This document shows, one piece after another, positions 1,764 to 63,672 of a stretch of 64,000 nt of DNA (its first letter is position 1; each line of letters starts with the position of its first letter). Where the stretch lies: sequence record LR745206.1, one strand, 5' to 3'. The notes under the pieces were generated by a model. It saw only the letters and a list, made by a program, of their open reading frames with translations, was not told where the DNA came from and searched no databases. Made by a program: the position numbers and the translations under genes.

Positions 1764-2255
1764 TTATAACATATCTTTTAATCCTACTAACATTTCACAA
1801 GAAAGACCAGATCTATCTCTAAGATTTACTTCGGTTGATATGTTTTTACCAAAATAGTTAATATCAACTTTTATATAAGCTCTAACAGAAAATCCAGATG
1901 ATGATTTTGACATCTGAACACTTGTTATCTCAGGAAATTGAATTTTTAAATCATTTGTGTATTTCCTTTCTAAGGATTTTTGCTCAACCCTTGTTATTGA
2001 TTTTGGTACATCTATATGATCTAACTCTCTACACTTATTAATCAATTCTTTTGATAGACCCAATTTAGTACCAACTGAGAAATCTATACTTGATGATCTA
2101 GCACCTGTATCGAACTTTGCTTTTACCTCAACTGTTTTACCTTCTCTAGTTAGAGATATTTTGTGTATACCATAGTAAATTTTATCTTTACTAGTATAAT
2201 CCCACTCAACATCACTTGATGATACCCAATCGTTGAATTTTTCTAAATATATCAT
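1764..2255 (-). CDS. retropepsin-like protease (RimK-associated 'ATP-dependent Zn protease' family)
   Basis: KAKFDTGARSSSID (DTG aspartyl motif) and VNLRDRSGLSCEMLVG; N-terminal MIYLEKFND tag. Confidence 0.8.
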   Translation of the reverse strand: MIYLEKFNDWVSSSDVEWDYTSKDKIYYGIHKISLTREGKTVEVKAKFDTGARSSSIDFSVGTKLGLSKELINKCRELDHIDVPKSITRVEQKSLERKYTNDLKIQFPEITSVQMSKSSSGFSVRAYIKVDINYFGKNISTEVNLRDRSGLSCEMLVGLKDML

Positions 2256-2270
2256 TAAGTATATATTATT

Positions 2271-3137
2271 TTACTTACACCATTTATCCACCATCAAGGT
2301 AACTAACCTAAAGAATTTTTTTCTATATTTTGGTAGCCTTTGGTTTATTTTATTTTCAATCAATTTTTTATTTTTCTCTATATCAGTTAATTCTTCTTCA
2401 TTGTAATTATTGAAAGTTGATCTAAATGCCTTTTTAATATATGATTTGATATATGTGAATATGCTATCATATTCATCTTTATAAAAATCTTTTGTGAAAA
2501 CAAATTGGTGGAATAATCTATTTATTTGGCTCTCAGTAAGATGGTTCTCAAACCTAAATTCTTTATCATAAACATACCAAGTCCAAGAAGTATCTGGTGA
2601 TTGTGATAGGAATTTTTCAAATAGATTATATATGTCACTTGGTGTTGGGTTATCTAAAAGGTTGAAATGTAGATAATCTGATATAAATTTATCAAAACTA
2701 ACATAATATCCGTGATATCTTGATTCAAACTCGTTAGTGTCTAATAAGTAGAATATACTTTGCGCGACAATTAATGGGTCATTCTTTTTAAGAATTTTCA
2801 ATTTACTATTTGAAACATGAAATATATCTTTATAGAAGAATTCTTTAACAATTGAATAATCTAGATGTTTTAATTCATGTAGAAATGTTGAATAATCTCT
2901 TCTATCAGAAAGAAGTATAGTCAACTTCTTTGTTGAAGTGTCTTTTTTGAATTGACCATCCAGTTTCTTCACCTTACCAATCTTTAGTGTGAATGGGAAA
3001 TTACCCTTTTTGTTCTTGTATATAAATATGAACTCATTTTTATCACTTGATGATATCTCATTAAAGTATTTTTTAGCTTGTTCTTCCAAATCAGACTTTA
3101 TTCCAAATTTCTCATTAAATGATTGAATATATTTCAT
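2271..3137 (-). CDS. putative HExxH metallopeptidase-like virion protein
   Basis: Likely start MKYIQSFNE at 3137 (track start extends through promoter); FLHELKH plus downstream NEFESR. Confidence 0.5.
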   Translation of the reverse strand: MKYIQSFNEKFGIKSDLEEQAKKYFNEISSSDKNEFIFIYKNKKGNFPFTLKIGKVKKLDGQFKKDTSTKKLTILLSDRRDYSTFLHELKHLDYSIVKEFFYKDIFHVSNSKLKILKKNDPLIVAQSIFYLLDTNEFESRYHGYYVSFDKFISDYLHFNLLDNPTPSDIYNLFEKFLSQSPDTSWTWYVYDKEFRFENHLTESQINRLFHQFVFTKDFYKDEYDSIFTYIKSYIKKAFRSTFNNYNEEELTDIEKNKKLIENKINQRLPKYRKKFFRLVTLMVDKWCK

Positions 3138-3185
3138 GTAGATATATATTAAATAATTTATTATATTTGTAAAAATAAATTTTAA

Positions 3186-3383
3186 ATGAATAAGTTTAAT
3201 AAAGGACAAAAGATATTCTATTTCTTTATGGATAGTCCTTGTCAATCAACGGTAAGTGATTTTTATATAAAGGACAATGATGTTTTTTATATCGATGCTT
3301 TATTTAATAATATAAAGGAGTGTTATGTTTTCAACACTAAGAAAGAATGTGTTGAATACCACAAGAAAAAGTGGTTAGTCTAA
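3186..3383 (+). CDS. hypothetical protein
   Basis: ORF track; TATATTTG at 3162-3169. Confidence 0.6.
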   Translation: MNKFNKGQKIFYFFMDSPCQSTVSDFYIKDNDVFYIDALFNNIKECYVFNTKKECVEYHKKKWLV

Positions 3384-3692
3384 TAGTCTACCTAATTTAT
3401 ATTCTCTGTTTAATTGTTGGAAGTTTTTAACTTTCTCAAGAAGATCGATACATTTAATATGTTTATCATCCATCTGACACCATTGATATTCATTTGATTC
3501 TGATTCTGTGTGTGAATATCCCAATTCATATTTTGATCCGAACATATTAATAGTGAAGAATTCACCACTCTTGTTATCTACACTATCGAATGCCTCAAAA
3601 TCTATATCAATACCAATTTCTTTACCATCACCACACTTTTCATTAAAGATAACGTCTGATAAGTATTTCCATGTTTTATCAAAATCTAACAT
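3375..3692 (-). CDS. hypothetical protein, C-terminal tag
   Basis: ends NREYKLGRLLD. Confidence 0.7.
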   Translation of the reverse strand: MLDFDKTWKYLSDVIFNEKCGDGKEIGIDIDFEAFDSVDNKSGEFFTINMFGSKYELGYSHTESESNEYQWCQMDDKHIKCIDLLEKVKNFQQLNREYKLGRLLD

Positions 3693-4033: not shown

Positions 4034-4069
4034 CTCACAAATATAATAATTAAAATTAATATATACAAT

Positions 4070-4273
4070 ATGAAAAATTTGAAAACATTTGAAGCATATG
4101 ATTATGAATATGAAAACTTTACACATAGTGATATGGAATATGTTAAAGATTTATATAGTGAAGGTATGACAGATCCAAAAGATATTGCTAGAGAAATGGA
4201 TTGGGATGATAATATTGATGAGCGAACAGTTATTCAGATAATTAAAGCTCTTAAAAATACTGGTGAAATTTAA
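4070..4273 (+). CDS. hypothetical protein, N-terminal tag
   Basis: MKNLKTFEAY; TAATATATA at 4057-4065. Confidence 0.7.
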   Translation: MKNLKTFEAYDYEYENFTHSDMEYVKDLYSEGMTDPKDIAREMDWDDNIDERTVIQIIKALKNTGEI

Positions 4274-4824
4274 TGAAATATTTAAAAAAATTTGATAGTA
4301 TAAATGAATCCATGAGTAGGGATGGTATGATAAATGTTATCAGAAACATTTTAAAGGAGGTTAATTCTAATACAGAATTGGATAGAAAAACAATGGATAC
4401 AGTAGTCCGTGGATTTGCTGATAAGCTATTTCCAAATGAACCAGATAAAGATTCTTTTTATAATAGTATAATTGGTGAAATTGAGTTTGAATCTAGAAGT
4501 GAAGTTGTTATGATAGATGGTAGAAGTGGTGGGCCAGTAATAGCATATAAACATGACGTTGATAATGATAAGATTTCTTTAACCAACGGTTATTTTTCAG
4601 GAACAGCTTATATTGGTGGTGAAGATGATGAGGATAGGGGAGTAGAGGATTATAGCTCACCTTTTCACAAAGGACAAGTTATACCAAATGATAATTTTGA
4701 TGATGTTGAGGAAATGGACTTTCAATATTCTAGATCAATACCAGATAATATAGTTAGAAAAAATTTAGATGATTATGTTAGTAAAAATTATAATGGTAAG
4801 ATAGTTAAGATTATTTACCATTAA
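4273..4824 (+). CDS. hypothetical protein, N-terminal tag
   Basis: MKYLKKFDSINES. Confidence 0.75.
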   Translation: MKYLKKFDSINESMSRDGMINVIRNILKEVNSNTELDRKTMDTVVRGFADKLFPNEPDKDSFYNSIIGEIEFESRSEVVMIDGRSGGPVIAYKHDVDNDKISLTNGYFSGTAYIGGEDDEDRGVEDYSSPFHKGQVIPNDNFDDVEEMDFQYSRSIPDNIVRKNLDDYVSKNYNGKIVKIIYH

Positions 4825-5273: not shown

Positions 5274-6287
5274 ATGAAATATTTGAGAACATACGAGGAA
5301 ATAGACTGGGGTAAATTAAACCCATTTAGTAAATCAGAGCCAAAAGTGGTTTTAACAAAGGCTGAAAAAATGTCTGATGAATTGAACAAACTAAAGGAAG
5401 TTATTGAAAATAAAAAACTAACTATACCGAGTGAAATAGATTCATTGAAATTTACTGGTGATATACCAAAGGGTACAAAAGATGAGGATAGATTTTGGCA
5501 CAAACACTCAGTTATAGAAACGCATTTCAAAAGAGAGTTTATAGAAAAATCATTATCCGGAACTGATTTAGATTTAAAAAGTATAGTTGGTGATCATAAA
5601 ATAACATCACAGGTATTGTGGAGTGATGATGATAAAAATATAAGCTATATAGAGTTTAAGATAGAGTTTGAACTAATTGGTAAATTTAAAGATGTTGGTA
5701 CCATGGGTTATAGTTATATCAGGATTTTCAAAAACATGATCAAAGAAAGGAAGGGTGATGAAAACTGCTTCTGTATAAGATTTGAATATGGTAGAAGAGA
5801 TGGTAGATATGAAGGTCAGACATTGAAAGATTATATAAGTAAATCACTATTCTCTTTAAAAAATCATATTATATTTGAGTTGAAAAAATTACACCTTTTA
5901 ATAAACAAGTCACTTGAATCAATAGAGAAGGATAAAAGGAAAGAGGTGTTGATAAGTAAAATAGAATCAATAAAAGAATGTTTCTATGATATAATTGATA
6001 TAAGTGAAAATCATGATATTTTTATTAAAGATTCTGGTGAAATACATTGCGAGTTTAAAATTAAAGGAATTATAGTTAAAAATCAACAAAAATCTAAAAG
6101 CGGTAGTAGCAAAGGATATAGCACTGTTTATATAGATTTTGATGAAGCTAAATTTGATCTGAATGATGTATTATTTAAAGTTTTTGGTAGTTTAATGGAA
6201 GCTAAACCTAGGGTAAATGATATTGTGCCTGGTGCTGAGTTTAAAATAGAATTATCCAAGGATGAAATTAAAGTGTTAATATCCTAA
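5274..6287 (+). CDS. hypothetical protein, N-terminal tag, F-x-[DE]-[LI]-x-D paralog family
   Basis: MKYLRTYEE; IKECFYDIIDIS; TAATATATA at 5256-5264. Confidence 0.75.
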   Translation: MKYLRTYEEIDWGKLNPFSKSEPKVVLTKAEKMSDELNKLKEVIENKKLTIPSEIDSLKFTGDIPKGTKDEDRFWHKHSVIETHFKREFIEKSLSGTDLDLKSIVGDHKITSQVLWSDDDKNISYIEFKIEFELIGKFKDVGTMGYSYIRIFKNMIKERKGDENCFCIRFEYGRRDGRYEGQTLKDYISKSLFSLKNHIIFELKKLHLLINKSLESIEKDKRKEVLISKIESIKECFYDIIDISENHDIFIKDSGEIHCEFKIKGIIVKNQQKSKSGSSKGYSTVYIDFDEAKFDLNDVLFKVFGSLMEAKPRVNDIVPGAEFKIELSKDEIKVLIS

Positions 6288-6302: not shown

Positions 6303-7235
6303 ATGAAATATCTATTACCGTATAAAATATATGAATCCTATGATGAGGATTGGTCAGGATTGAGTAGGGAGAGAAAAATGGGTAAATTATTACACCTATA
6401 TTCTTCTATCCCATTAAGAAAGGAAAAAGCATCAGAAGTTATTAAATCTATTGTTAAGTACTCAAAAAAGAATTTTAGTATTTATGATAAAAAAGTGATA
6501 ACACCATGGAATAAACTACATGATAGATTAAGATTCAATGATTATTTTAACTCATTATTATCTTCAAAAGATACAAGAGGTCATAATTTCGAAGGATTAA
6601 TCGCCGGGTTATTTGATGGTGAGATACAATCGAGAGGATCTAGAGCTGATATTATTCTTAAAGGTGGTGAAAGGTGTAGTATAAAATTCATTGATAGTAA
6701 ATCAGAAGCACCTGTATTGGGATCAATTTACGCCTCAATAAAAGATAGACCAGATATTTTGGAAAAAATTGGAGATAGAAGTATCTATGAAATATTTAAC
6801 ACAATTTCAGTCGATGAAGAAAAATTTAGAGAAGAGATATTTGATTTAGCATTTGGTGGTGTTGATTTATTCCTAATAGGATATGCTACTAGATCATCCC
6901 AAATAGAGTTACATGTTATTAAATTCGAAAATATGAAAGAAAATGTGTGTGCTGGATTGGTTGTTGCTCCAAAGGTCAAATCAGCAAAATGGAGTGTTAG
7001 AATATCATCATCAGCATATAGAAATGATGATACACTTAAAATTAAAATACCAACGATATCGATGGATCAATTGGATTCACTATGGAGCCAAGGAACTAGA
7101 AAATGGTCAAAAACTATATTCGGTAATAGTATAACAAATAGATTAAGAACTGATGTTATAGAGGACATAATAGATGATAAAGAAGAGATTGTTAATAATC
7201 TGGAAATTGATATATTAAAAACAAATAAAGAATGA
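6303..7235 (+). CDS. putative PD-(D/E)xK restriction-endonuclease-like nuclease
   Basis: GHNFEGLIAG...SRADII...CSIKF arrangement (E, D, x-x-K); N-tag MKYLLPYKIYES. Confidence 0.45.
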   Translation: MKYLLPYKIYESYDEDWSGLSRERKMGKLLHLYSSIPLRKEKASEVIKSIVKYSKKNFSIYDKKVITPWNKLHDRLRFNDYFNSLLSSKDTRGHNFEGLIAGLFDGEIQSRGSRADIILKGGERCSIKFIDSKSEAPVLGSIYASIKDRPDILEKIGDRSIYEIFNTISVDEEKFREEIFDLAFGGVDLFLIGYATRSSQIELHVIKFENMKENVCAGLVVAPKVKSAKWSVRISSSAYRNDDTLKIKIPTISMDQLDSLWSQGTRKWSKTIFGNSITNRLRTDVIEDIIDDKEEIVNNLEIDILKTNKE

Positions 7236-7603
7236 TGAGAAAACTTAAACTTTATAGGGAATTCTTAGGAACACCTACAAAAAATTATTCTTATATGGAA
7301 GCAAAAATGCAAGAATTGTCAGATTTAGTTAATGATGTGCTAAAAAGTGATTATGGGACTGGTGCTAGTTTTGAATATGACTTAACAGATAGTGATTTGG
7401 AAGTAACTCTAGTTTTAGACCATGAGCATGAGGTAGAGGATTCAATAACATTAGAAATACTTTTTGATTTAGACTCTTTAATGTTGGGTATATATCTAGG
7501 TCATGAAGAAGACTTTCACCTCAATTCAATCGAAGAAGGATTGGATATGATTGAGAAGAAAATTTATGATGTTCTTGGTATATCTGAGAAGAAAAAGAAC
7601 TAA
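7232..7603 (+). CDS. hypothetical acidic protein, N-terminal tag
   Basis: MMRKLKLYREF. Confidence 0.7.
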   Translation: MMRKLKLYREFLGTPTKNYSYMEAKMQELSDLVNDVLKSDYGTGASFEYDLTDSDLEVTLVLDHEHEVEDSITLEILFDLDSLMLGIYLGHEEDFHLNSIEEGLDMIEKKIYDVLGISEKKKN

Positions 7604-7604
7604 T

Positions 7605-8492
7605 ATGGAACACTTAGAATCATATAATGAGGGTTTGTTTAATTGGAGAAGAAAAAGTGGTAAAAAACCTTTATTTAGAAAATTTTCCAAAGATGATGTC
7701 TATTTAAAGACTGTGAGTTATACTAAAAGGGTAGGTCCTTCCAAATTGAATGATAATAATACCTTTTATGCTTTAAATTTCCCAGAAATGGGACTTTCTT
7801 TTATTAAAGAACATATAATTAAAAGTAGAAATAATTTCAGATATGGTGATAAAGGTGTGTTTGGTAAATTTGGTGGGTATAGTTGGGATCCAAACGCATT
7901 TAGACCATCTTCTAATGTTGATAGTACATCTACTTGGTATGATGTTGGTAATACATTTATAAATCTCAGAAAGATAAGTGATGAGTTGGGGTATAAGGTA
8001 AACCAAGCTGTTCATATACCATCAAAACAGATAGATAGTAAGATAGTTGAGATAGTAAATGCTGCTTTTTATAACAAAGTTTCTGGATTATCACATTATA
8101 TAGATGAGTGTTTAACACTTCTATATAAAGTGGAAGGTGATGATTCTTATTATCAAATAGGACAAATCGATAAATTGGAAGGTAAGTCTGATAAAAATAT
8201 AGTCGATGAAGTTATTGAGGAGAATTTTTTAGAACTTATGGATGATGGATTAATTAGTTTCTCTTCTCAAAAGTTCACAAATAAGAATAATGTTGCTTAT
8301 AAGTGTTTGGTTAAAGTCTCTAAAGATATGACACCTGAAATTCTATTTAAAATATCAGAATGTTTATTGGTAGCGGCAAGAAGATTAAGTGATATGAATA
8401 TTGATATTGATATAAAATCTATGCAACACACAGAGGATAGAAATACGAAGACAGGAACAACTGATATTGAGTTTACTGCTATTCAGAGATAA
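7605..8492 (+). CDS. hypothetical protein, N-terminal tag, F-x-E-L-x-D-x-G paralog family
   Basis: Likely start MEHLESYNEG at 7605; IEENFLELMDDG. Confidence 0.7.
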   Translation: MEHLESYNEGLFNWRRKSGKKPLFRKFSKDDVYLKTVSYTKRVGPSKLNDNNTFYALNFPEMGLSFIKEHIIKSRNNFRYGDKGVFGKFGGYSWDPNAFRPSSNVDSTSTWYDVGNTFINLRKISDELGYKVNQAVHIPSKQIDSKIVEIVNAAFYNKVSGLSHYIDECLTLLYKVEGDDSYYQIGQIDKLEGKSDKNIVDEVIEENFLELMDDGLISFSSQKFTNKNNVAYKCLVKVSKDMTPEILFKISECLLVAARRLSDMNIDIDIKSMQHTEDRNTKTGTTDIEFTAIQR

Positions 8493-9036
8493 ATCCCAAA
8501 TCTATTAATCTATTAATATGATCGAATCCAAATTCACTAGGATTCATCTGATTCAATTCTTCTATTGTAAACCATTTAGCATCTTGTGCATCATCCATAC
8601 CCTTAACACCATTCCCATATTTACCAGGTATCTCAACAGTGAAAGAATGACTCTTTACCCAAGATGTCTCATCATTTCTTGGATCCCTATTTCTATCATC
8701 ATAAATACCAATTAATTTGAAATCTGAATCTTTAGTAATATTAGATAAGTCTAATCCAGTTTCTTCGAGAACTTCTCTTTTAGCAGCATCCAATTCTGTC
8801 TCTAATCCAGGTTCCCATTTAGAACCTCTTGTTGACTTTGTATCCACAAATCCACCAGGTATACTCCATTTATTTGGCTCTGCTGATGCTAGTTTTGATC
8901 TCTGTACAAGTAAGACTTGTTGAAAACCATCAACTGTCCTAGTCACGATAGTATCAGATGTTGGATTTGGACCAACATATCTTAATTTACTTCTGAAAGT
9001 TTTATCGAATGATTCGAATTTTTTGATAAATACCAT
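8479..9036 (-). CDS. Nudix hydrolase (ADP-ribose pyrophosphatase/NrtR-like)
   Basis: WSIPGGFVD...ETELDAAKREVLEETGL Nudix box; RDPR; GMDDAQDAKWF; N-tag MVFIKKFESF. Confidence 0.9.
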   Translation of the reverse strand: MVFIKKFESFDKTFRSKLRYVGPNPTSDTIVTRTVDGFQQVLLVQRSKLASAEPNKWSIPGGFVDTKSTRGSKWEPGLETELDAAKREVLEETGLDLSNITKDSDFKLIGIYDDRNRDPRNDETSWVKSHSFTVEIPGKYGNGVKGMDDAQDAKWFTIEELNQMNPSEFGFDHINRLIDLGFISE

Positions 9037-10293: not shown

Positions 10294-11307
10294 TTATTTA
10301 TTTTCTATTTTTACTCTAAAATAAAGTTCATAAATCTCAAAGTTTTTAGTTTCACTTCTTATGAATCCTTTTTTAGTAACAATCTTTTGTGTTTTTATAT
10401 CTTCATACCAATAAAGAATGGTTATTAGATCCCGTACCGTATCTTGTCCTGGTATCTCTTCCCTTATTTTATAACCATTATCCTTTCTTTGTCCACTTAC
10501 TGGTATTAATTTAACATTTTCTGATTTTATCTTATTAAAAAATTTACCAACCCAGATATTAAATATTGACATTAATTGTTCTTTATTATCAGATTTACCA
10601 TGACTGATGGCTTTTTTAATAACCCACTCTGATGGTAGTAATTCACCATCACTCAATTCAGGAAATATATTTATATCAGTGTGTGTCGGTAGGCTTCTGA
10701 GAGCTATTTTTAGTTCATGTAGGTCTCCTCTCCAAGAATTATCAAAATTAATAGAATATCCTTCTATATTTTGACCATCTAAAGATCTGAATCTCTCAGT
10801 ATCATTTCTTGTTGGTTCAATTTGTAAACCCCCAATAATATTAGCTATATCTTCATAATCAATAGGTGATCCATTATCTTCCTTATCAAAAATAACTCTT
10901 ATTTCGACATGATTAACACTTCGTATTGAGTAATAAACATTAGCCTTATCAGAAAGCATCGATTTCACCCTATGTATAGAATTATAAATGGAATCTATTA
11001 TATCTATATCTGATTCAAAATATATACTACCATCCCAATTTCTAACATCACCTTTCCCACCATTAGATATAGATTCCTCTGTTATTTCTCTATCCAATTC
11101 TATTTCTATACCTGGGTAATAGTTTTTAACATCACTTTTTCTTCTATGTGGATAACCAGTTGATGTTGATATATAAACTTGATCTATTAATAAAGTATAT
11201 CCATTATCTACTAAGTCAATAAATATCTCCTCGATATTATTATCATCAATATTTATTCTTGATAATAATTCTTCCTTACTTTCAACTATCTGTGAAAATT
11301 TTCTCAT
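10294..11307 (-). CDS. hypothetical protein, N-terminal tag, F-x-D-L-x-D-x-G paralog family
   Basis: MRKFSQIVES; IEEIFIDLVDNGY; TAATATATA at 11313-11321. Confidence 0.75.
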   Translation of the reverse strand: MRKFSQIVESKEELLSRINIDDNNIEEIFIDLVDNGYTLLIDQVYISTSTGYPHRRKSDVKNYYPGIEIELDREITEESISNGGKGDVRNWDGSIYFESDIDIIDSIYNSIHRVKSMLSDKANVYYSIRSVNHVEIRVIFDKEDNGSPIDYEDIANIIGGLQIEPTRNDTERFRSLDGQNIEGYSINFDNSWRGDLHELKIALRSLPTHTDINIFPELSDGELLPSEWVIKKAISHGKSDNKEQLMSIFNIWVGKFFNKIKSENVKLIPVSGQRKDNGYKIREEIPGQDTVRDLITILYWYEDIKTQKIVTKKGFIRSETKNFEIYELYFRVKIENK

Positions 11308-12665: not shown

Positions 12666-13085
12666 ATGATAGAAAAATTTGATGAATTTGGAGAACCTAA
12701 AAGGGGCAAATTCAATATAAAGGAAATATTATCCAAGGGTAAAGATTTTACCAAAGGTGTTTGGGATGCTGTGAAGAGAGAGAAAAGAGAAACTGCTCAA
12801 GCATTAGGTATCTTACAAAGAATGGTTAAGGGTGAAAAAGTAACAGAGAAGGAAAAATTGTTTCTTAAAAGACAAAGTAAAGATTTAGCAAAGATATTAC
12901 CATTGATAGCCATTCAAGGAATACCTGTTCCAGTTCCTATTACACCATTTTTAATAGCATTAGGTAATAAATATGGATTCTCTATCTTACCTACTTCTCA
13001 AGAAGTTTTAGGTAAAGAGATAGAAAGTGAAAGAAGTGAAAAAGAAAATAAACTAAAAGGATTTGATAATTTTGGAAGTGAATAA
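12666..13085 (+). CDS. LETM1-like domain protein
   Basis: ILQRMVKGEKVTEKEKLFLKRQSKDLAKILPLIAI...LPTS resembles LETM1 core; TAATATATA at 12648-12656. Confidence 0.45.
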   Translation: MIEKFDEFGEPKRGKFNIKEILSKGKDFTKGVWDAVKREKRETAQALGILQRMVKGEKVTEKEKLFLKRQSKDLAKILPLIAIQGIPVPVPITPFLIALGNKYGFSILPTSQEVLGKEIESERSEKENKLKGFDNFGSE

Positions 13086-17991: not shown

Positions 17992-17998
17992 ATTTTTA

Positions 17999-50298: not shown

Positions 50299-50317
50299 TA
50301 ATTTTTATAAATAGTCT

Positions 50318-51931: not shown

Positions 51932-51935
51932 CTTA

Positions 51936-52193
51936 TTACCAAGTTCTAGTATTATTAAGTGGTGGATTTACTGGTTGTGGTACAGTTGCAGCAACTATCA
52001 ATAGATTATCTAAAGCTTCCTCGTATGTTGATCCAGTTGCAGATATTTTTACCTCTGGCATAGTAGCCACAAATGAAGCAGTTGCGTATGTAGGCATTGA
52101 AGCTGTTATGCCAGGTCCAATCGAAACCTCTTGTTGACCATTAACATGTGCCGGGTTATAAGATATATTTATAAGATATTTAGGATCTGTCAT
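51936..52193 (-). CDS. small protein with HicB-like motif
   Basis: FVATMPEV...ATGSTYEEALDNL; weak. Confidence 0.4.
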   Translation of the reverse strand: MTDPKYLINISYNPAHVNGQQEVSIGPGITASMPTYATASFVATMPEVKISATGSTYEEALDNLLIVAATVPQPVNPPLNNTRTW

Positions 52194-52230
52194 TTTCTTT
52201 AGTAATTTTTATTTATATATTAATTTCAAA

Positions 52231-53757
52231 TTATATAAAATTATCAAAATCGCTTTTTCTAGCAAGTGTATAAGTGAATGTATCTTTTTCTGTGTTATTT
52301 ATTTGACTATCACATAACATTATAAATTGTTTATATTGTGTGACACTTTTAAATACTTGAGAACCCTCAGAGTAGTTATAAACATTTTCAGAAGTTCCTA
52401 TTTCACTAGATCTTATTATGCTTATAGCAAAATTACCTGTTTCGATTGGTGATTTATAATTGTATCTTTCTACACCTTGATTCCTATGAACTGATGAATT
52501 ATTAAATTTCAAACATTTATAGTTTTTATCATCTTTATGGTATCCTATTTTACACTGATCAACATATTGACCAAGTGATAATATTGCTACATTTTCTGGT
52601 AATAACTCAGTTTTTGGTATAAATCCAGGTGTTGTTGTTATTGAATATTCTGTTAAATCCCAGTTACCATTTTTATTTCTAAAAAATACATATAAAACAT
52701 CATCAAATTTATTAGTAACAACACCATTATCCTTTGTCCTAAGTGATACGATATTTAATGTATAAATATCATTATATATTTTATACCCTTTTGATTCCAT
52801 AAATCTCACCAACTTCTCTATTGTTGGATTAGACTCAACTGTTTTTAAATCTTCTTTAACTGGGATGTTATTTTCCTTTTCTGGATTAGGAACATTATCA
52901 GGTTCTCCATTGGTAGCTGGTGCGACATAAGTATCATCATAGTCAGATTTTGGACCATCCTGTGGTTTGAAATCTTCATCAGTTTTTGTTGTCATGTCAT
53001 TATCACCCTTTGTTGAGTTCCAAGCATCTCCAACTTGTGGATCATCCTCTCTATCAGTCATTTTAACAGTGGTTACTTGGTTATTATCAACTATATTAAC
53101 ATGATGTGAAAGAAATACAGGGTCTCTTAATGCTTTATATTTTAATAATACTGATATGAATGCTGGATTAGGAACAACTGGTGCTGATAAATTACCTAAA
53201 AATGGACCTGCTTGATTACCTAATAGATTATCAACGAATTCATCAAACCAGTCCATCCAATGATTACCTAATATTGCTTGTTGAGCCGCAGTCGCGTCTC
53301 CTATATTAACATTCCTATTATTATCTTTAAGATTTAGATCGATTGTGTTTTCTGTTATATTGATGTTGTTGTACTTATGGTCTATTTTAAGACCTTCTTC
53401 CTCATTAACATATATTTGTGTTTTGTGATCAAATATTAATGATTTCATTGATTTGTAATTATCACCATCTAATGTTTCTAACTTCTTTTCTAAGTTTATA
53501 TTATAATGATCTGAGAATATAAACTCTGGTTTATAGGTATCTCCTTGATCAAATACAACAATTAAAACTTTACCTTTTTCTGGAACATTGAATGTGTTTC
53601 CATTTAAATCTTTCCAAGGAGTTGCCCATGGTAGATCTTCTACTGGTATTTCATCAAAAATATCCAATACTCTAACCTTAACTCTTCCGAGTTTTTTAGG
53701 ATCTGTGTTATCCTCAACAACACCTATATAAGTTTTATTAGGTTCTACTTTATTCAT
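52231..53757 (-). CDS. gp5-like baseplate hub/spike protein (OB-fold) with degenerate YkuD-like C-terminal domain
   Basis: YIGVVEDNTDPKKLGRVKVRV...DLPWATP, VPEKGKVLIVVFDQGD; C-terminal LNIVSLR, NKFDD, TTTPG, GQY, FTYTL. Confidence 0.8.
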   Translation of the reverse strand: MNKVEPNKTYIGVVEDNTDPKKLGRVKVRVLDIFDEIPVEDLPWATPWKDLNGNTFNVPEKGKVLIVVFDQGDTYKPEFIFSDHYNINLEKKLETLDGDNYKSMKSLIFDHKTQIYVNEEEGLKIDHKYNNINITENTIDLNLKDNNRNVNIGDATAAQQAILGNHWMDWFDEFVDNLLGNQAGPFLGNLSAPVVPNPAFISVLLKYKALRDPVFLSHHVNIVDNNQVTTVKMTDREDDPQVGDAWNSTKGDNDMTTKTDEDFKPQDGPKSDYDDTYVAPATNGEPDNVPNPEKENNIPVKEDLKTVESNPTIEKLVRFMESKGYKIYNDIYTLNIVSLRTKDNGVVTNKFDDVLYVFFRNKNGNWDLTEYSITTTPGFIPKTELLPENVAILSLGQYVDQCKIGYHKDDKNYKCLKFNNSSVHRNQGVERYNYKSPIETGNFAISIIRSSEIGTSENVYNYSEGSQVFKSVTQYKQFIMLCDSQINNTEKDTFTYTLARKSDFDNFI

Positions 53758-53763
53758 TAGTTA

Positions 53764-55680
53764 TTATCTTCTTTGTCCACCAGAGAATCCACCACTACCT
53801 CTACCTAGTGCTCCACCAAGTGCTCCTCCTAAAAACCCAACTAAATCTCCTCTCAGATCATAGAAAAATCTATTAGCAAAATTACCAACAGTTCCGGGTT
53901 GAGCATCTGTATATATGTTTTTTGGTGGTGATATAGTACCACCTTGTATAGCTATAAATGTTTTATTCAATGTTCTAGCTAATAATTGGGTTCTTGTATT
54001 GATAGCTGTTTGTAATTCCTTTTTAGCGGAAGCTACAGTTCTATTTAATAGTGTCTTAGCGAATATTTTTGCTTTACTTTTGGAAGATTTCTTCTCATCT
54101 TGTAAATTACCACTATCTAATCCAGTAACATAACTACTTTCTAAGTTATCAGATTCACCATCTATTGGTTCGATTATCTCATTTGTTCCTAAGTTATTTA
54201 TACTATTGAAAATAAATGGTTTAGTTACACCATTCTCTCTTAATTTATTATCACCCACGGTGAAGAAGCTAGGAACTGATGTATCTGATACTGATTGTGT
54301 ACCTCTGGCTCCTGGATTACCTATTTTCCAAATAGATCCTGAATCATAACCTACATATTTACCAAATCCATCACCAGTAGGTATAAATCTCTCAAATTTA
54401 ACACTTGAATATTTATAATCGAATGTTATTGTTGTTTTATCATGTACTGATATATTACCCATATCTATATCACCAGGGTGTGATGTTTGATCAAAAAAGA
54501 ACTGACACTCTCTAAGTGAATAGACATGTCTGGAAACATTATCCTTTATTATTTCTAAATTACCATTACTAACAGCCTTTCTAACTCTATTAAAATTTCT
54601 ACATTCTGATACTATTATATCACAATTAAATCTTAGTAGGTTTTCTGGAACCATTCCTTTACCATTTGGTTTAGACCAATATAATAACTTATATAAGTGT
54701 GATAAAGTACCGACACTTAATGAGACATCTTCTAAAAAATCCAATGTTATAACATCTTTTCTATAATCAGCTAAATATTTAAATGTTCCCGGTTTATTAG
54801 TTTCTATTAAATTTTGCAATCCTGTTATTTTTTGAATATAGTAACTCATATAAGCCTTTTTACCAAGTTGGTATATTGATTTTTGGTTTTCAACACTTGC
54901 TGAGTTTGTATTTGTTCTACTCATTGTTGTTTGTTCTGTATCAATACCAATTGTTCCCTTTGTTTTGAAGAATTTAGTGAATTGTTGTTTAAAATCCTCA
55001 TATACTGGTATACGAGCTGCTAATTCATTAACAGATGTATATTGATTAAGAAAGTCTATAACAGATCCATTCAATAGTGGTGATGAAATACCATCTATCA
55101 CGACCTCAAATCCGAATATAACAGGATCGTTTTGTTCAAATGGTGTTGATGTAAATTGACTCAATCTTAAATCAGATTCACCGTTTAATGGATTCTCTAT
55201 TGGATTAAGACCATCAATAGCTTGTAGTCCGTGTTTGAAATAATCAGTTGATGTATCACCAAATATCATATAGTGATCTCTCATGGAGTATGGTGAGTCT
55301 TTCAATTCTGTACTTGACTTTGGTAAATTAATACTTTCATTAAATCTATCTTTGGTATCTATCTCTATTAAACCATTTGGTGTTATTTTTTGACCCATCC
55401 AATCTTCATATTCATAATTACCAACTTTTATCTTACTTGATATAGCTGTAGATCCATCATCTATTATACCTAAACTTGGTTGTATTAGAACAGGAGGTAA
55501 GAACCCAGTAGTTTTTGAGAAATCTGGATTAATTTGTGTTTGTGGCCAAGGATTATTAGCTATCTTTAAGGCATCATCTCTAACTCCGAATAATTTATCT
55601 TTTATATTACCGAATTTTTCCTTTATTGATGAACCACCTGCCTGTCCACCGAATTTATCTTTTAATGATTTAAATGCCAT
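53764..55680 (-). CDS. putative tail/baseplate structural protein
   Basis: Position in baseplate cluster; YYIQKITGL, ITLDFLEDV, VPENLLRFNCDIIVSE; TAATATATA at 55685-55693. Confidence 0.5.
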   Translation of the reverse strand: MAFKSLKDKFGGQAGGSSIKEKFGNIKDKLFGVRDDALKIANNPWPQTQINPDFSKTTGFLPPVLIQPSLGIIDDGSTAISSKIKVGNYEYEDWMGQKITPNGLIEIDTKDRFNESINLPKSSTELKDSPYSMRDHYMIFGDTSTDYFKHGLQAIDGLNPIENPLNGESDLRLSQFTSTPFEQNDPVIFGFEVVIDGISSPLLNGSVIDFLNQYTSVNELAARIPVYEDFKQQFTKFFKTKGTIGIDTEQTTMSRTNTNSASVENQKSIYQLGKKAYMSYYIQKITGLQNLIETNKPGTFKYLADYRKDVITLDFLEDVSLSVGTLSHLYKLLYWSKPNGKGMVPENLLRFNCDIIVSECRNFNRVRKAVSNGNLEIIKDNVSRHVYSLRECQFFFDQTSHPGDIDMGNISVHDKTTITFDYKYSSVKFERFIPTGDGFGKYVGYDSGSIWKIGNPGARGTQSVSDTSVPSFFTVGDNKLRENGVTKPFIFNSINNLGTNEIIEPIDGESDNLESSYVTGLDSGNLQDEKKSSKSKAKIFAKTLLNRTVASAKKELQTAINTRTQLLARTLNKTFIAIQGGTISPPKNIYTDAQPGTVGNFANRFFYDLRGDLVGFLGGALGGALGRGSGGFSGGQRR

Positions 55681-55705
55681 AAACTATATATTAAATTCTT
55701 TAGCT

Positions 55706-57001
55706 CTAAGACAATGTTCCCCCAATATTACCAGATTGTGCCTTAACTGCTGCTATACCTTTTTCGCTAAGTCTCCACAAAGCCACCGTATTTGGATCAA
55801 CATGATTCTGTTGTATAGCATTTTGTTTAAAATCACTCATCCATTTAACACCTGTCCATATTTGAATATGTCCATATTTCTTACCACCTGTATAACCCAT
55901 AACTATAATATCCCCTATTTGCCACTGGTTTGGGTCTTGTATATATGTACCTTTCCAAGATCCATTTTTTTGTGTTATTCTAACTTTATCTTTGTAGTGT
56001 CCAGTTTTACTAAATGAGGCATTTCCACCACCAGTACCAGGACTTTTGAATGAGAACCAATCAGCATTACCACTTATTTTACCTAAATCTTTTATACCGG
56101 TAAGAGCATATAGAACAGCCTGTGTTCCTTGTGGACAAAGACCATGTATTCCTTTTGTATATCCCTTATTTAAATTTTCATATTTAACCCTAGCGTTCTT
56201 ACCGAGAGTTCTAGCTAATTTACCAGCTAATCTTAATAATTCATCAAAACTACTAACTGGTTTTATATCAACAACTTCTCCTGTGTCGGTATCTTGTAGA
56301 TTTTCAGATTGTTCTTGATCATTTATATTATTACTTATCTCATCTTGTAAAACAAACTCCTGTTCATCCAATCCATCAAAATCTGTTTCTAAAAATTCAG
56401 GATCTAGTTCATCAAGACTTTCAAAATCATCTTGGAATATAAATGAATTAGATTCATCTACTAACACCAATTCTCCAATGTTTGATGGTATATCATTTGT
56501 GTTTGAGGATATTGGAATAAATATTCCATCTCTTTCAACATTGAATGTGAATATTGAATCTTTTGGTGTGCTAGCTGTCGCTGTGTTTATTGGTGTACTA
56601 GATGTTCCTGATCCGTTATTTGGTGTACTAGCAGTAGGATTTGATGTTTGTGTTATAGGTTCTTGTGTGATATTTTCCGTTACTACTCTTGTCCCTAAAT
56701 CAACATTATAAATATTACCAATAACATCAACAATATCTTCAACAATCTCATCAACTAAATCACTTATATGTTCAGCAAATCCCTCATCCCCTTCCACGGT
56801 AAATTCACCAAGTGATGCTATTTCTAATGCGGTTTTTCCATTAACCACATACGTACTTGTTGTTGTGAATGGTTTTGGTAATCCTTTAACCGTAGCAACT
56901 GCTGTATATTTCGGTCCAAGTGTTTTGAATATAATTTCTCCTGTGATATTTCTTTCATTATCACTATTTGGATCTTTTACTGATATTTTATAAACTGACA
57001 T
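55706..57001 (-). CDS. baseplate-region protein with C-terminal CHAP/NlpC-P60-like amidase
   Basis: GLCPQGTQAVL (Cys), GNADWF, QIGDIIV, YGHIQIW (His), WMSDFKQ; acidic FIFQDDF..LDELDPEF linker. Confidence 0.72.
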   Translation of the reverse strand: MSVYKISVKDPNSDNERNITGEIIFKTLGPKYTAVATVKGLPKPFTTTSTYVVNGKTALEIASLGEFTVEGDEGFAEHISDLVDEIVEDIVDVIGNIYNVDLGTRVVTENITQEPITQTSNPTASTPNNGSGTSSTPINTATASTPKDSIFTFNVERDGIFIPISSNTNDIPSNIGELVLVDESNSFIFQDDFESLDELDPEFLETDFDGLDEQEFVLQDEISNNINDQEQSENLQDTDTGEVVDIKPVSSFDELLRLAGKLARTLGKNARVKYENLNKGYTKGIHGLCPQGTQAVLYALTGIKDLGKISGNADWFSFKSPGTGGGNASFSKTGHYKDKVRITQKNGSWKGTYIQDPNQWQIGDIIVMGYTGGKKYGHIQIWTGVKWMSDFKQNAIQQNHVDPNTVALWRLSEKGIAAVKAQSGNIGGTLS

Positions 57002-60440: not shown

Positions 60441-60552
60441 CTCATGTTTATATATAAAATAAGTTTGTTTGTTTATTTTTGTGTTTTTTCGAGGTTTTTT
60501 ATAAGAGGGAGGGCAGAAATAAAGATATATAATTAAAAATTAATTAAAAATC

Positions 60553-60888: not shown

Positions 60889-60891
60889 AAT

Positions 60892-60918
60892 AAAAAACCA
60901 CTCAATGAGTGGTTTTTT
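60892..60918. terminator. bidirectional intrinsic terminator
   Basis: AAAAAACCACTC-AAT-GAGTGGTTTTTT. Confidence 0.85.
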
Positions 60919-61550: not shown

Positions 61551-61555
61551 ATTTT

Positions 61556-62221
61556 TTATTTTCTTTTTATTAAGATTTCATCAATCATACCATATCTTTT
61601 AGCATCCTGTGCATTCATCCAATAATCTCTATCTCCGTCTTTTTGTACTTTATTATATGTTTGACCAGTTCTATCTGATATTATATCATATAATTCTTTT
61701 TTTAATGAGTTTATTTCTTTGGCTTCTATCTCTATATCGGATGCTTGTTGCATCCACCCACCACCAATAGGTTGGTGTATCATTGTTCTGCTTCTTTTCA
61801 AAGCTTTTCTCTTACCTTTCTCACCAGAACAGAGTATTATAGCACCCATTGATGCTGCTAATCCAGTATTAACTGTAGCTATATCTGGTTTTATGAAATC
61901 CATAACATCAAGTAATCCAAGTCCAGAATAAACTGATCCTCCCGGACTATCAATATAAATTGATATATCATCATCACTTTCTGATTCTAAATAGAGTAAT
62001 TGAGCTTTTATTATATTACAGATGTAATCATCTATCTCAGTTGATAGGAATATTATTCTCTCATCTAATAATTTAGAAAAAACATCAATAGGCATATCAT
62101 TATCACTTAGTACATTTGGTGTGTTATTTTTCTTCTGTATATGTTTGAAATAGTCATTGGTGTATAAACTACCTATTGATTTACTAAGTAGGTAATTTTG
62201 AAAGTCTTTAGATTGATTCAT
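61556..62221 (-). CDS. clpP: ATP-dependent Clp protease proteolytic subunit (paralog 2)
   Basis: DVFSKLLDERIIF, IDSPGGSVY, GLAASMG, MIHQP, GDRDYWM. Confidence 0.95.
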   Translation of the reverse strand: MNQSKDFQNYLLSKSIGSLYTNDYFKHIQKKNNTPNVLSDNDMPIDVFSKLLDERIIFLSTEIDDYICNIIKAQLLYLESESDDDISIYIDSPGGSVYSGLGLLDVMDFIKPDIATVNTGLAASMGAIILCSGEKGKRKALKRSRTMIHQPIGGGWMQQASDIEIEAKEINSLKKELYDIISDRTGQTYNKVQKDGDRDYWMNAQDAKRYGMIDEILIKRK

Positions 62222-62318
62222 TTATCAAAGTTATTTTTTAGTTTTATGTATTTATTATATGAATGTTTATTAAAAGTGGGTTTATGTTTTTAATATATAA
62301 TAAAAAAATAAGTATTAT

Positions 62319-62606
62319 ATGAAAACTAAAGTTGAAATTAATGGATACGAAATCGAGATCGAAGAAAAAGATGGTCTTATTATCGTAAAAGCTGAGAAAG
62401 ACGAAGAAATTGTTGAAGAATTCACAATTGAAATGGAAGAAGGTGAAGAAGGACAAGATGAGGTTCAAGGATTTGAAGACTTCGAAGGTGGTGAAGAAGA
62501 AGGTGACTTTGACGGAGACGACTCAGAAGGTGAAGAATTTGGAGACGAAGACGAATCTAAATTAGAGTCTTTCCAATCTTTTGTTAACAAGAACATAAAA
62601 AAATAA
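62319..62606 (+). CDS. highly acidic small protein
   Basis: E/D-rich tract; ends KLESFQSFVNK; TAATATATA at 62291-62299. Confidence 0.75.
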   Translation: MKTKVEINGYEIEIEEKDGLIIVKAEKDEEIVEEFTIEMEEGEEGQDEVQGFEDFEGGEEEGDFDGDDSEGEEFGDEDESKLESFQSFVNKNIKK

Positions 62607-62616
62607 ATCTTAATTA

Positions 62617-63672
62617 ATGATTAAGAAATTTAATCAATTTCTAGAAAATAACAATTCTAGATACCTGCTATACTATGCTTTCGACTGGGATGATAATATA
62701 TTAAACATGCCGACTGTAATACATATGGATAAGAGGGTTGGTGAATCTTGGGTACCTACTGATGTATCAACTGCTGAATTTGCAGAAGTTCGTGGGTCTG
62801 ATGATTATAGGATATTAAATAACAACCCTGATGAAGCATTCTCTGAATTTAGAGATTTTGGTCCAAGAGGTATGGAAGCGTTTTTGATAGATGTGAAATC
62901 AGCTATTAAACAAAAAAGATTTGGTCCTGCTTGGGATGATTTCATTGAATGTTTGAGTAATGGTTGTGTATTTGCTATAATAACAGCTAGAGGTCATGAG
63001 CCAGAAGCTATTAGATTAGGTATAGAGTGGATAATAGACAATGTTATGACTGAGGAAGAGGTTTATGAAATGTATAATAACCTATTAAAATTTGAATATG
63101 TATTTGATAGAGAAGAGGGTGATAAAATACTTAGAGGTAAACCCTCTGAGAATGTATCATTCCGTAAATACTTAGATCAATGTGATTTGGTTGGGGTTTC
63201 ATCACCATCAAGAGGTGGTGCTCCGGATAATCCAGAAAAGTCCAAAGAAGAAGCTTTGTTGGAATTTAAAGAAAAGGTTAATAATTATGCGTCTAGAATC
63301 GGTGTTAAAGCTAAAGTTGGATTTTCTGATGATGATTTGAAAAATGTTAAACACATCGAAGACCTAATTGATAATTTAAATCATGAACAATTCCCAAATA
63401 TAATTGAATATGTTGTTAAGGGAACAAAAGATCCATCATCTATAACTAAAAAGGTTAGAACTATGAGTGAAGGATCACAAACTACTGGGTTAGAATCGTC
63501 TGTTTTACCGTTTACACAATTTAATAATATGACAAATAAATTGTACCCAAAGGGTCCGGATAATAGGCAAGATGATTTTGCTAATGAGTTTAGAAGACAA
63601 TCTGAGTATTTAGCAAAAACTTCAAAAGAAACTTTAGATAAAAAAAATATTAAAAATAAAAAATCCTCTTAA
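62617..63672 (+). CDS. HAD-superfamily-like protein, N-terminal tag
   Basis: AFDWDDNIL, IITARGH, GFSDDD; MIKKFNQFLEN. Confidence 0.65.
   Translation: MIKKFNQFLENNNSRYLLYYAFDWDDNILNMPTVIHMDKRVGESWVPTDVSTAEFAEVRGSDDYRILNNNPDEAFSEFRDFGPRGMEAFLIDVKSAIKQKRFGPAWDDFIECLSNGCVFAIITARGHEPEAIRLGIEWIIDNVMTEEEVYEMYNNLLKFEYVFDREEGDKILRGKPSENVSFRKYLDQCDLVGVSSPSRGGAPDNPEKSKEEALLEFKEKVNNYASRIGVKAKVGFSDDDLKNVKHIEDLIDNLNHEQFPNIIEYVVKGTKDPSSITKKVRTMSEGSQTTGLESSVLPFTQFNNMTNKLYPKGPDNRQDDFANEFRRQSEYLAKTSKETLDKKNIKNKKSS

Follow-up and report, generated by a model that had tools for sequence, protein, structure and literature searches.

The 64,000-nt window comprises bases 62001-126000 of LR745206.1, the 634,780-bp genome of an uncultured Mahaphage (Al-Shayeb et al. 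2020). A preliminary description listed 23 genes of this window, and spoke of about 24, whose products share an N-terminal capsid-targeting-like tag. We found all 23 N-termini at the expected starts. ORF 38692-39378 uses a GTG start. The gene at 7605 begins at an internal ATG of the longest ORF, but independent gene calls use that start (295 aa) and also give 228 aa for the gene starting at 39378 and 458 aa for the gene starting at 40765. The genes are listed below with window coordinates, strand and score in bits from position matrices trained only on genes outside the window (held-out score). Distances refer to a promoter-like motif, TAATATATA, upstream of the start codon.

1764-2255 (-), tagged, 163 aa, RimB-like/Zn_protease (PF05618), MIYLEKFND; 6.6 bits; motif 13 nt upstream of the ATG; nearly all of 99 database relatives carry the tag.
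2271-3137 (-), tagged orphan, 288 aa, MKYIQSFNE; 19.7 bits; motif 14 nt upstream; no Pfam or PHROG family.
4070-4273 (+), tagged orphan, 67 aa, MKNLKTFE; 9.2 bits; motif 13 nt upstream.
4273-4824 (+), tagged orphan, 183 aa, MKYLKKFDSINES; 18.3 bits; no promoter of its own, and its start abuts the upstream stop, so the tag is not simply part of the promoter.
5274-6287 (+), tagged, 337 aa, MKYLRTYEE; 22.4 bits; motif 18 nt upstream; a paralogue at record positions 17926-18765 is also tagged.
6303-7235 (+), tagged orphan, 310 aa, MKYLLPYKIYES; 27.7 bits; motif 13 nt upstream.
7232-7603 (+), tagged orphan, 123 aa, MMRKLKLYREF; 12.0 bits, counted from the second Met.
7605-8492 (+), tagged orphan, 295 aa, MEHLESYNE; 18.1 bits.
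8479-9036 (-), NUDIX hydrolase (Pfam, 6e-16), 185 aa, MVFIKKFES; borderline by its own score of 4.1 bits, but counted as tagged on the evidence of its homologues (see below); an untagged paralogue lies at 41750-42229.
10294-11307 (-), not supported as tagged, 337 aa, MRKFSQIVES; -7.7 bits; motif 14 nt upstream.
12666-13085 (+), borderline tag, 139 aa, MIEKFDEF; 3.7 bits, between the 95th and 99th percentile of the null; motif 18 nt upstream.
28898-30298 (-), tagged, 466 aa, MIKKYLDFIKES, a long form with the T4-like core aromatic-x-x-F-[ILV]-x-E; 28.5 bits; motif 31 nt upstream.
30348-30626 (+), tagged orphan, 92 aa, MKYIKSYKIFES; 37.6 bits, the best in the window.
30674-31045 (+), borderline tag, 123 aa, MKIKRFNE; 1.2 bits; motif 28 nt upstream.
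31266-31520 (+), tagged, 84 aa, with a body resembling the first mature residues of the major capsid protein; 18.2 bits; an orthologue is present in LR756502.1.
33930-34499 (-), tagged orphan, 189 aa, MKHLNRFDE; 21.6 bits; second in an operon behind 34496-35470.
34496-35470 (-), borderline tag, GH108 lysozyme-domain protein (Pfam Glyco_hydro_108, 4e-15, residues 147-240), 324 aa with a 130-aa N-terminal extension, MDKLSNYNIFLLE; 5.1 bits; contains the T4-like core; endolysins of other phages align only from about residue 134; motif 15 nt upstream.
38213-38695 (-), tagged orphan, 160 aa, MKHLNRY; 11.4 bits.
38692-39378 (-), tagged orphan, 228 aa, GTG start, (M)KHLKNFLES; 26.9 bits; motif 13 nt upstream.
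39389-40765 (-), not supported as tagged, 458 aa, MKSINEN; -7.3 bits; motif 13 nt upstream.
43634-45625 (-), tagged, 663 aa, weak DHH and winged-helix matches below the curated Pfam cut-offs, MISKYNQFINEE with the T4-like core; 29.9 bits; the LR756502.1 orthologue keeps the tag; motif 30 nt upstream.
45658-46086 (-), tagged orphan, 142 aa, MKYLKYFES; 13.5 bits; the LR756502.1 orthologue is only 28% identical overall yet keeps the tag.
62617-63672 (+), tagged, 351 aa, MIKKFNQFLEN; 19.7 bits; no family beyond a weak MazE-like match.
47975-57001 (strand not assigned), untagged tail/baseplate block with Phage_base_V and baseplate-hub PHROGs (52231-53757) and a sheath-like PHROG (49792-50298); three of its genes (starts 47975, 52193, 55680) have TAATATATA upstream.

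Specificity and modularity of the N-terminal peptide

The shared peptide, 9-12 residues long, is real. Of the 23 N-termini, 17 exceed the 99th percentile of an internal-Met null in the held-out test, four are borderline (starts 35470, 9036, 12666 and 30674), and two do not fit the motif (11307 and 40765). The expression ^M{1,2}.{1,3}[LIFY]..[FY].{0,3}E hits 17 of 89 ORF N-termini in the window, compared with 1.8% of internal Met sites, 1.6% of all positions and 2.5% of spurious ORFs. Shuffled N-termini gave a mean of 2.3 hits and a maximum of 8 in 2000 trials. The window holds only a share of the tagged genes. Genome-wide, 117 of 921 ORFs, about one in eight, score at least 10 bits, against 5 of 3193 internal Met sites (0.16%), an enrichment of about 80-fold. 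The union with the regular expression gives 151 and includes a few false positives.

The genome is 29% GC and the tag residues have AT-rich codons, so we considered whether the pattern is a chance or compositional artefact. This explanation is refuted. Besides the enrichment and the shuffling result, two equally AT-rich relatives lack the tag: it occurs in 1 of 53 ORFs of Tenacibaculum phage PTm1 (31% GC), and in 1 of 56 and 0 of 76 ORFs of Lak-A1 (27% GC). In 121 independent IMG/VR matches to a pattern that left position 7 free, this position is F/Y in 88%.

The conserved first codons could instead act at the RNA level, as an initiation feature of near-leaderless transcripts starting just downstream of TAATATATA. 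In 68 genes the motif lies only 13-15 nt upstream of the ATG, so many transcripts may have almost no leader. The predicted hosts are Bacteroidetes (PMC7162821). Members of this phylum make little use of Shine-Dalgarno pairing. However, synonymous codon use inside the tag equals genome-wide use, with Ser encoded by both TCN and AGT and Leu by TTA, TTG and CTN, which shows that selection acts on the peptide. Furthermore, 60% of tagged genes have no promoter of their own, some overlap the upstream stop, and tail, portal and capsid genes with the same promoter lack the tag. We consider an RNA-level role very unlikely and largely refuted by the codon analysis.

The tag is a modular addition to unrelated, mostly orphan and fast-evolving proteins. 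Only 22 of 151 tagged proteins have any paralogue once the tag is removed. Most of the 18 closest database homologues of the NUDIX protein carry clear tags, whereas the next clade starts without a tag exactly at the conserved core, and untagged bacterial homologues, found in a bacterial gene context, start exactly where the tag ends. AlphaFold2 places the NUDIX tag outside the fold as a short, detached predicted helix, with low confidence, a pLDDT of 48, for residues 1-10 and at least 96 after residue 20. Tagged genes turn over fast between LR745206.1 and LR756502.1 while the tag is kept, paralleling the T-even internal proteins, in which only the capsid-targeting sequence is conserved (PMC3012670).

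The putative cargo does not form a defined enzyme set. The preliminary description had proposed an anti-defence and takeover kit of a Nudix hydrolase, a nuclease-like protein, a DHH phosphoesterase, a HAD protein, an aspartyl protease and a GH108 lysozyme. Only about 12 of 150 tagged proteins match any Pfam family, and in the window only NUDIX, GH108, a RimB-like protease and a weak DHH match were confirmed. No tagged HAD protein or nuclease was found there, and the HAD-type NT5C gene at 36435-36878 is untagged. Tagged proteins are mostly acidic (median pI 4.9, 78% below 6) and are depleted in membrane-like segments (3 of 117 against 69 of 804).

Head-assembly genes and the motif that ends the tag

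The genome encodes a T4-type head module. It includes a portal (Portal_T4, 3e-57), a capsid protein (Gp23, 2e-26) with an N-terminal extension of about 85 aa, and a gp21-family protease (phrog_207, 4e-30). A profile of four Mahaphage proteases finds T4 gp21 (5JBL) as the best solved structure (E 9e-4), although structure prediction could not confirm the protease fold (pLDDT 25-45 for the N-domain). The protease is fused to about 13 repeats of 14 aa that are predicted to form one helix spanning residues 236-451.

The tag ends in hydrophobic-x-Glu-Ser/Asn/Ala, and this motif recurs in the head proteins. Defined after seeing the tags as [LIFYVM]-x-E-[SNA], it averages 0.43 per 100 aa in the proteome. 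The protease-repeat protein is the densest of all proteins of at least 120 aa, with 4.3 per 100 aa in its C-terminal part, and the capsid protein has 2.35 per 100 aa in residues 1-85 and 0.21 in the rest. A Glu-Asn junction at about residue 44 of the capsid protein is invariant in four Mahaphages that are 35-53% identical, and is followed by 70-90 Glu-free residues. The tagged 84-aa protein (31266-31520) aligns with the capsid protein (record 200752-202434) by BLASTP at 21 of 36 identical residues, and the homology begins directly after its own ..IE|NA and the capsid protein's ..NE|NA.

Tagged genes also share TAATATATA with structural genes. It directly precedes 40% of tagged genes, against 10% of untagged genes (odds ratio 5.8, p 4e-17), and 75% against 25% lie in promoter-headed same-strand runs. 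The same motif precedes the portal gene, the protease-capsid operon and tail genes, but also a UvsX-like recombinase and a tRNA-synthetase-like gene, so calling it late is an inference.

A putative capsid-targeting signal

We propose, with moderate confidence, that the peptide is a capsid-targeting sequence of the phage T4 type used on a far larger scale. In T4 the signal is a 10-19-residue N-terminal propeptide with targeting residues 4 and 7 and processing residues 8 and 10, cut after Glu by gp21 (PMC9026906, PMC5694885). In the Mahaphage, position 4 is L/I in 84%, position 7 is F/Y in 81%, the first Glu is at position 8, 9 or 11, giving three length forms, and the next residue is S/N/A in about 64%. 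As in T4, the terminal Glu has a hydrophobic residue two positions earlier. The core aromatic-x-x-F-[ILV]-x-E, taken from the printed T4 sequence, occurs in the first 16 residues of 20 proteins, against 0.12 per 1000 internal residues. No tag sits in the exact register of the T4 signal, however, and the T4-like core is shifted by one or more residues.

In this view, the short amphipathic segment, with hydrophobic residues at positions 4 and 7 (and 10), would dock the newly made protein onto the scaffolding core of the prohead, which is probably the long helical repeat domain fused to the protease. After shell assembly the gp21-family protease would cut after the Glu that ends the tag, and the freed protein would stay in the head and enter the host with the DNA. 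Our analysis establishes the motif and its specificity, its modularity, the T4-type head genes, and the recurrence of the terminal motif in the scaffold-like domain and at the capsid-protein propeptide junction. Docking, cleavage, packaging and injection are inferred from sequence alone, without proteomic, structural or expression data. The earlier proposal that the tagged proteins are packaged and injected is thus partly supported, by indirect evidence. Some observations sit uneasily with it: 13-16% of all ORFs has no precedent among known packaged proteomes, and the acidic cargo contrasts with the highly basic T4 internal proteins. The tag is also sparse near the portal of other Mahaphages and, apart from the single ORF above, lacking from Lak-A1, although a portal search shows at least a T4-type portal in those phages. 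A T4-type head therefore does not require this tag.

The tag could alternatively be a sorting or docking signal for another destination, a shared amphipathic N-terminal helix that binds a common phage or host partner such as a hub protein, a compartment or a chaperone, without being packaged. Its modularity, the detached predicted helix, the large number of tagged proteins and their acidity are compatible with this reading. It is nevertheless unlikely, as it does not predict the conserved terminal Glu followed by S/N/A, the enrichment of that motif in the protease's repeat domain and the capsid-protein propeptide, or the homology break at the capsid protein's Glu|Asn junction. A third possibility is an N-terminal degron, recognized by a Clp-type or other AAA+ protease of host or phage to limit the lifetime of a class of phage proteins. 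Two ClpP-family genes lie in the window (13119-13859 and 61556-62221), and some N-terminal ClpX recognition signals begin Met-basic-hydrophobic. The same three observations argue against a degron, and co-regulation with structural genes fits poorly with proteins meant to be removed. We regard this reading as improbable.

Other phages offer partial parallels. In the giant phages phiKZ, 201phi2-1 and SPN3US, many internal head proteins are processed after Glu by a distant gp21 homologue, and their propeptides are thought to target the proteins to the prohead (PMC5694885, PMC10052503). Their cleavage motif is Ser/Ala/Gly-x-Glu, their propeptides are mostly longer than 100 residues and are not a shared short sequence, and about 8-19 proteins are processed, against more than 100 candidates here. 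In phage P1, an N-terminal segment of DarB of 30 residues or fewer is sufficient to load a foreign protein into the capsid, and the cargo is anti-restriction (PMC9024508). No shared consensus was found among the P1 Dar proteins, and the P1 head system is not of the T4 type. T4 itself offers the closest parallel, since its signal is attached to diverse, fast-evolving proteins that share only the tag, but it marks a handful of proteins that are small, basic and DNA-binding, whereas 117-151 mostly acidic and orphan proteins are tagged here and the protease is fused to the putative scaffold. If the capsid-targeting reading is correct, this phage may carry more than 100 ready-made proteins into its host.

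A shared N-terminal peptide

LR745206.1 ("uncultured phage", 634,780 bp; the window is record positions 62001-126000) is the 634-kb genome of the Mahaphage clade of Al-Shayeb et al. 2020, whose predicted host is Bacteroidetes (PMC7162821). The window is 27-33% GC and contains no tRNA genes and no N stretches. The only close relative in the phage collection is LR756502.1 (642 kb).

The preliminary description listed 23 proteins with similar N-termini in this region, and the observation holds: all 23 peptides are present at the starts that it listed. The gene at 39378 uses a GTG start and the start at 7605 is an internal ATG of the longest ORF, but independent gene calls in the public collection use exactly these starts. 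A regular expression written from the list hits 17 of 89 window ORF N-termini, compared with 1.8% of internal Met sites, 1.6% of all positions and 2.5% of spurious ORFs, and shuffled N-termini reach at most 8. To avoid circularity, the rest of the genome was read as 13 separate, unjoined pieces, and position matrices were trained only on genes outside the window. Of the 23 listed peptides, 17 exceed the 99th percentile of the internal-Met null, four are borderline (35470, 9036, 12666 and 30674) and two do not fit (11307 and 40765). Genome-wide, 117 of 921 simple ORFs score at least 10 bits (the strict set), against 5 of 3193 internal Met sites (0.16%). The union with the regular expression is 151, which includes a few false positives such as a D12 methyltransferase and a PolB-like exonuclease.

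The motif starts at Met1, and the first Glu is at position 8, 9 or 11 in 99 of 117 proteins. Position 4 is L/I in 84% and position 7 is F/Y in 81% of the strict set, whereas in untagged proteins the figures are 23% and about 7% or more.

Residue shares in the strict set of tagged N-termini
Position 2: K 64%, I 19%
Position 3: Y 53%, H 27%
Position 4: L 59%, I 25%
Position 5: K 56%, R 14%
Position 7: F 44%, Y 37%
First Glu: position 8 in 27 proteins, 9 in 35, 11 in 37
Residue after that Glu (counts): S 47, N 15, A 11, E 10

An origin by chance or AT bias is rejected by the internal-Met, shuffled and spurious-ORF controls and by two AT-rich relatives. Tenacibaculum phage PTm1, which has 31% GC, a Bacteroidetes host and a T4-like portal, has 1 marginal case in 53-55 ORFs, and Lak-A1 (27% GC) shows 1 of 56 and 0 of 76. 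PTm1 was the nearest annotated isolate in a search for a cultured relative with a virion proteome, and since it lacks the tag it served only as a control; no proteome or cultured isolate of this clade was found. A signal at the RNA level is rejected by codon analysis. Inside the tag, synonymous codon use equals genome-wide use: AAA is 75% of Lys codons, Ser is encoded by both TCN and AGT, and Leu by TTA, TTG and CTN. Selection is therefore on the peptide.

The tagged proteins

The tag is a modular add-on and the only conserved part of otherwise diverse proteins. All-against-all BLAST, run on the window and on the genome, rejects a paralogous gene family: with the first 15 residues removed, only 22 of 151 tagged proteins have any paralogue in the genome, and 129 have none. 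In the Nudix family of gene 8479-9036, most of the 18 closest database homologues (60-74% identical) carry the tag, in both the short and the long form, whereas the next clade (48-54% identical) begins directly at the conserved core with no tag. One of the latter sits beside a bacterial alpha-2-macroglobulin gene, which is a cellular context. An untagged Nudix paralogue in the window aligns from residue 57 of the tagged one, for which AlphaFold2 gives pLDDT 48 for residues 1-10, 71 for 11-20 and at least 96 afterwards. The GH108 domain of 34496-35470 aligns to the endolysins of other phages only from about residue 134. In the RimB-like protease family of 1764-2255, nearly all of 99 relatives are tagged. 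In a 42-kb stretch of LR756502.1, 15 of 64 ORFs are tagged; many have no detectable homologue in LR745206.1, and orthologues as low as 28% identity keep the tag.

Only about 12 of 150 tagged proteins match any Pfam family at 1e-4, including Sa_NUDIX, PolyA_pol, an Rnl1-type RNA ligase, NFACT-R, NUDIX, M15_4, radical SAM and methyltransferases. A PHROG search of ten tagged window orphans returned no family. The HAD and nuclease cargo proposed in the preliminary description could not be confirmed. Tagged proteins are acidic, with a median pI of 4.9 (78% below 6) against 5.6 for untagged proteins, and in this respect the cargo, as distinct from the tag, does not resemble the small, highly basic internal proteins of T4. 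They are slightly longer than average, clustered (48 adjacent pairs against 24.5 expected) and poor in membrane-like segments (3 of 117 against 69 of 804).

Untagged window genes with clear families are metabolic, replicative or tail genes: two ClpP, RNA ligase, RNase P protein, NAMPT, two NUDIX, patatin, GH19, PrsW, RpiB, NT5C, metallophosphatase, FKBP, a helicase and Phage_base_V. Features of the window include:
13119-13859 (-) and 61556-62221 (-), two ClpP-family genes, 40% identical to each other; the one at 61556-62221 has an orthologue (67% identical) in LR756502.1
22331-23992, 24003-24980 and 25064-26059, three neighboring genes, all untagged: a weak match to the NAMPT N-terminal domain, a second NUDIX gene and a patatin-like phospholipase gene
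15454-18102 (-) and 17999-19294 (-), two large ORFs matching Plug/CarboxypepD_reg (TonB-receptor-like) and a beta-helix family, an unusual outer-membrane-type protein in a phage

The presence of the two ClpP-family genes in the window is all that was seen in favor of an alternative in which the tag would be an N-terminal ClpX-type degron, recognized and degraded by a Clp unfoldase-protease.

Head assembly, promoter-like motif and distribution

The genome encodes a T4-type head-assembly set (record coordinates):
193127-194860, portal: Portal_T4, 3e-57
198546-200669 (locus L004, 27546-29669), protease, 707 aa: phrog_207 "head maturation protease", 4e-30 over residues 2-265
200752-202434, major capsid protein, 560 aa: Gp23, 2e-26, aligned from residue 86
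291407-291880 and 207176-207907, extra partial copies of the major capsid protein; one resembles its propeptide plus first mature residues, with the same H-S-I-N-E-N stretch, and the other its C-terminal part

None of the portal, protease and major capsid proteins, nor the tail proteins, carries the tag. Homology of the protease to T4 gp21 is supported, although its Pfam Peptidase_S77 match reaches only 0.005, below the cut-off, and a single-sequence search against solved structures found nothing. A profile of four Mahaphage protease N-domains finds T4 gp21 (5JBL_A) as the best solved structure (E 9e-4), aligning the invariant D-H-P and S-S-R-A-A-G stretches. The AlphaFold2 model of the protease was too poor for a fold search (mean pLDDT 52; N-domain 25-45). 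The C-terminal part of the protein holds about 13 repeats of 14 residues, predicted as one 215-residue helix spanning residues 236-451 (pLDDT 70-84) and followed by an acidic low-complexity stretch. We infer that this is a protease-scaffold fusion. More than 1800 metagenome proteins match the protease N-domain.

In T4, the signal is a 10-19-residue N-terminal propeptide in which residues 4 and 7 decide targeting and residues 8 and 10 decide processing, and gp21 cuts after Glu; T-even internal proteins are diverse, with only the signal conserved (PMC9026906; PMC5694885; PMC3012670). The Mahaphage tag corresponds to this signal in its location and at positions 4 and 7, a correspondence of sequence only. 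The ten-residue T4 signal printed in bioRxiv 10.1101/2021.01.19.427310 has an aromatic residue at 4, Phe at 7, Ile at 8 and Glu at 10. The pattern aromatic-x-x-F-[ILV]-x-E occurs in the first 16 residues of 20 of 921 proteins here, against 0.12 per 1000 internal residues (about 18-fold over expectation), but none is in the exact T4 register, the shift being at least one residue, and ten residues cannot prove common descent.

The terminal motif of the tag, a putative gp21-type cleavage site ([LIFYVM]-x-E-[SNA]), averages 0.43 per 100 aa in the proteome. The protease-repeat protein is the densest of all proteins of at least 120 aa, with 21 sites and 4.3 per 100 aa in its C-terminal part, and three other Mahaphage proteases show 2.2-3.3 per 100 aa in their C-terminal parts. 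The capsid protein has 2.35 per 100 aa in residues 1-85 and 0.21 in the rest. In four Mahaphage capsid proteins (35-53% identical), the Glu-Asn at about residue 44 is invariant and is the last Glu before a Glu-free stretch of 70-90 residues. The alignment of the capsid protein to T4 gp23 covers only the C-terminal half (E 1e-3), so the propeptide boundary could not be transferred from T4 and was inferred from conservation and Glu distribution. The tagged 84-aa protein at 31266-31520 matches the capsid protein (21 of 36 identical), and the match starts immediately after its own tag-end Glu|Asn and the Glu|Asn of the capsid protein. The N-terminus of the protease itself has invariant L5, I6 and E8, which recalls the site noted near the N-terminus of T4 gp21 (PMC9026906).

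The 9-mer TAATATATA lies within 45 nt upstream of 141 genes genome-wide, with bimodal spacing of 13-15 nt and 26-38 nt from the start codon; the window has 24 sites (e.g., 4057+, 5256+, 6290+, 9049-, 47948+ and 55693-). The motif precedes 40% of tagged genes against 10% of untagged genes (odds ratio 5.8, p 4e-17), and 75% of tagged genes, against 25% of untagged, lie in same-strand runs that it heads. It also precedes the portal gene, the protease-capsid operon, and tail and fiber-like genes, but a UvsX-like and a tRNA-synthetase-like gene as well. We infer that it is probably a late-type, single-element phage promoter, of which the 13-15-nt class would give nearly leaderless mRNAs.

An exact pattern (the 9-mer, four free bases, then five constrained codons) found at least 120 IMG/VR loci, on contigs of up to 597 kb. 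In these loci position 7, which the pattern did not constrain, is F/Y in 88%, and a form with Glu at position 8 and an aromatic residue at position 10 is the commonest in the 121 pattern-matched peptides. Pooled, 283 of 1303 ORFs (21.7%) are tagged, against 2.5% of internal Met sites. LR756501.1 (735 kb) has 7 of 55 tagged ORFs in one sampled region and LR756504.1 has 3-5 of 72. The same pattern gave only 14 hits in 596 Gb of cellular genomes, most of them chance. Two Chitinophagaceae isolates, Taibaiella lutea (NZ_VWSH01000001.1; locus L155, 2148-2384) and Edaphocola flava (NZ_SAIQ01000001.1; locus L150, about 3080-3301), each have a single small gene with the same promoter-like motif and tag, a possible clue to the hosts of this phage clade. 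The Taibaiella gene lies beside transposase-like genes. Eight tagged ORFs lie within 8 kb of a "bacterial" MAG scaffold (Candidatus Muiribacterium halophilum, JALOAD010000028.1; locus L158), which is probably a mis-binned phage contig.

A putative capsid-targeting tag

The best-supported reading, which we hold with moderate confidence, is a T4-type capsid-targeting and cleavage tag used on an unprecedented scale. The proposal in the preliminary description, that the tagged proteins, enzymes among them, are packaged and injected with the DNA, is partly supported, and only indirectly. The analysis establishes the motif and its specificity, its modularity, the T4-type head genes and the recurrence of the terminal motif in the protease repeats and the capsid-protein propeptide, whereas cleavage, packaging and injection, like the scaffold and promoter roles, are inferred from sequence. 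Against this reading, there is no direct evidence for packaging, the cargo is acidic, the register is shifted relative to T4, the cleavage motif was defined post hoc, and Lak phages, in which a portal search found a T4-type portal, lack the tag. A different destination for the tagged proteins is an alternative. Capacity is not an obstacle: one copy of every tagged protein is about 3.6 MDa (33,080 residues), and SPN3US is reported to pack more than 40 MDa of ejection proteins (PMC7411985).

The principle of such a tag is known from T4, whereas the scale, the three length forms, the clade and the protease-repeat fusion are new. A search of the literature on capsid targeting sequences, jumbo phages, Mahaphages, megaphages and prohead proteases found no description of this motif. 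A more far-reaching possibility, which remains tentative, is that a whole clade of uncultured huge phages loads more than 100 different proteins, about one eighth of the coding repertoire and mostly fast-evolving orphans, into the capsid through one short N-terminal address tag. The phages would inject them with the DNA, so infection would begin with a pre-made, highly variable proteome rather than with gene expression.

If the tag is a packaging address, it would mark by sequence alone the injected "first-strike" proteins of megaphages that cannot be cultured, giving function-class labels to more than 100 orphan genes per genome and to thousands across metagenomes. It would extend the T4 principle of a conserved address on variable anti-defense cargo by more than an order of magnitude, and would partly explain what very large phage genomes spend their coding capacity on. 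Even if the destination differs, a proteome-wide sorting signal in a phage is unusual.
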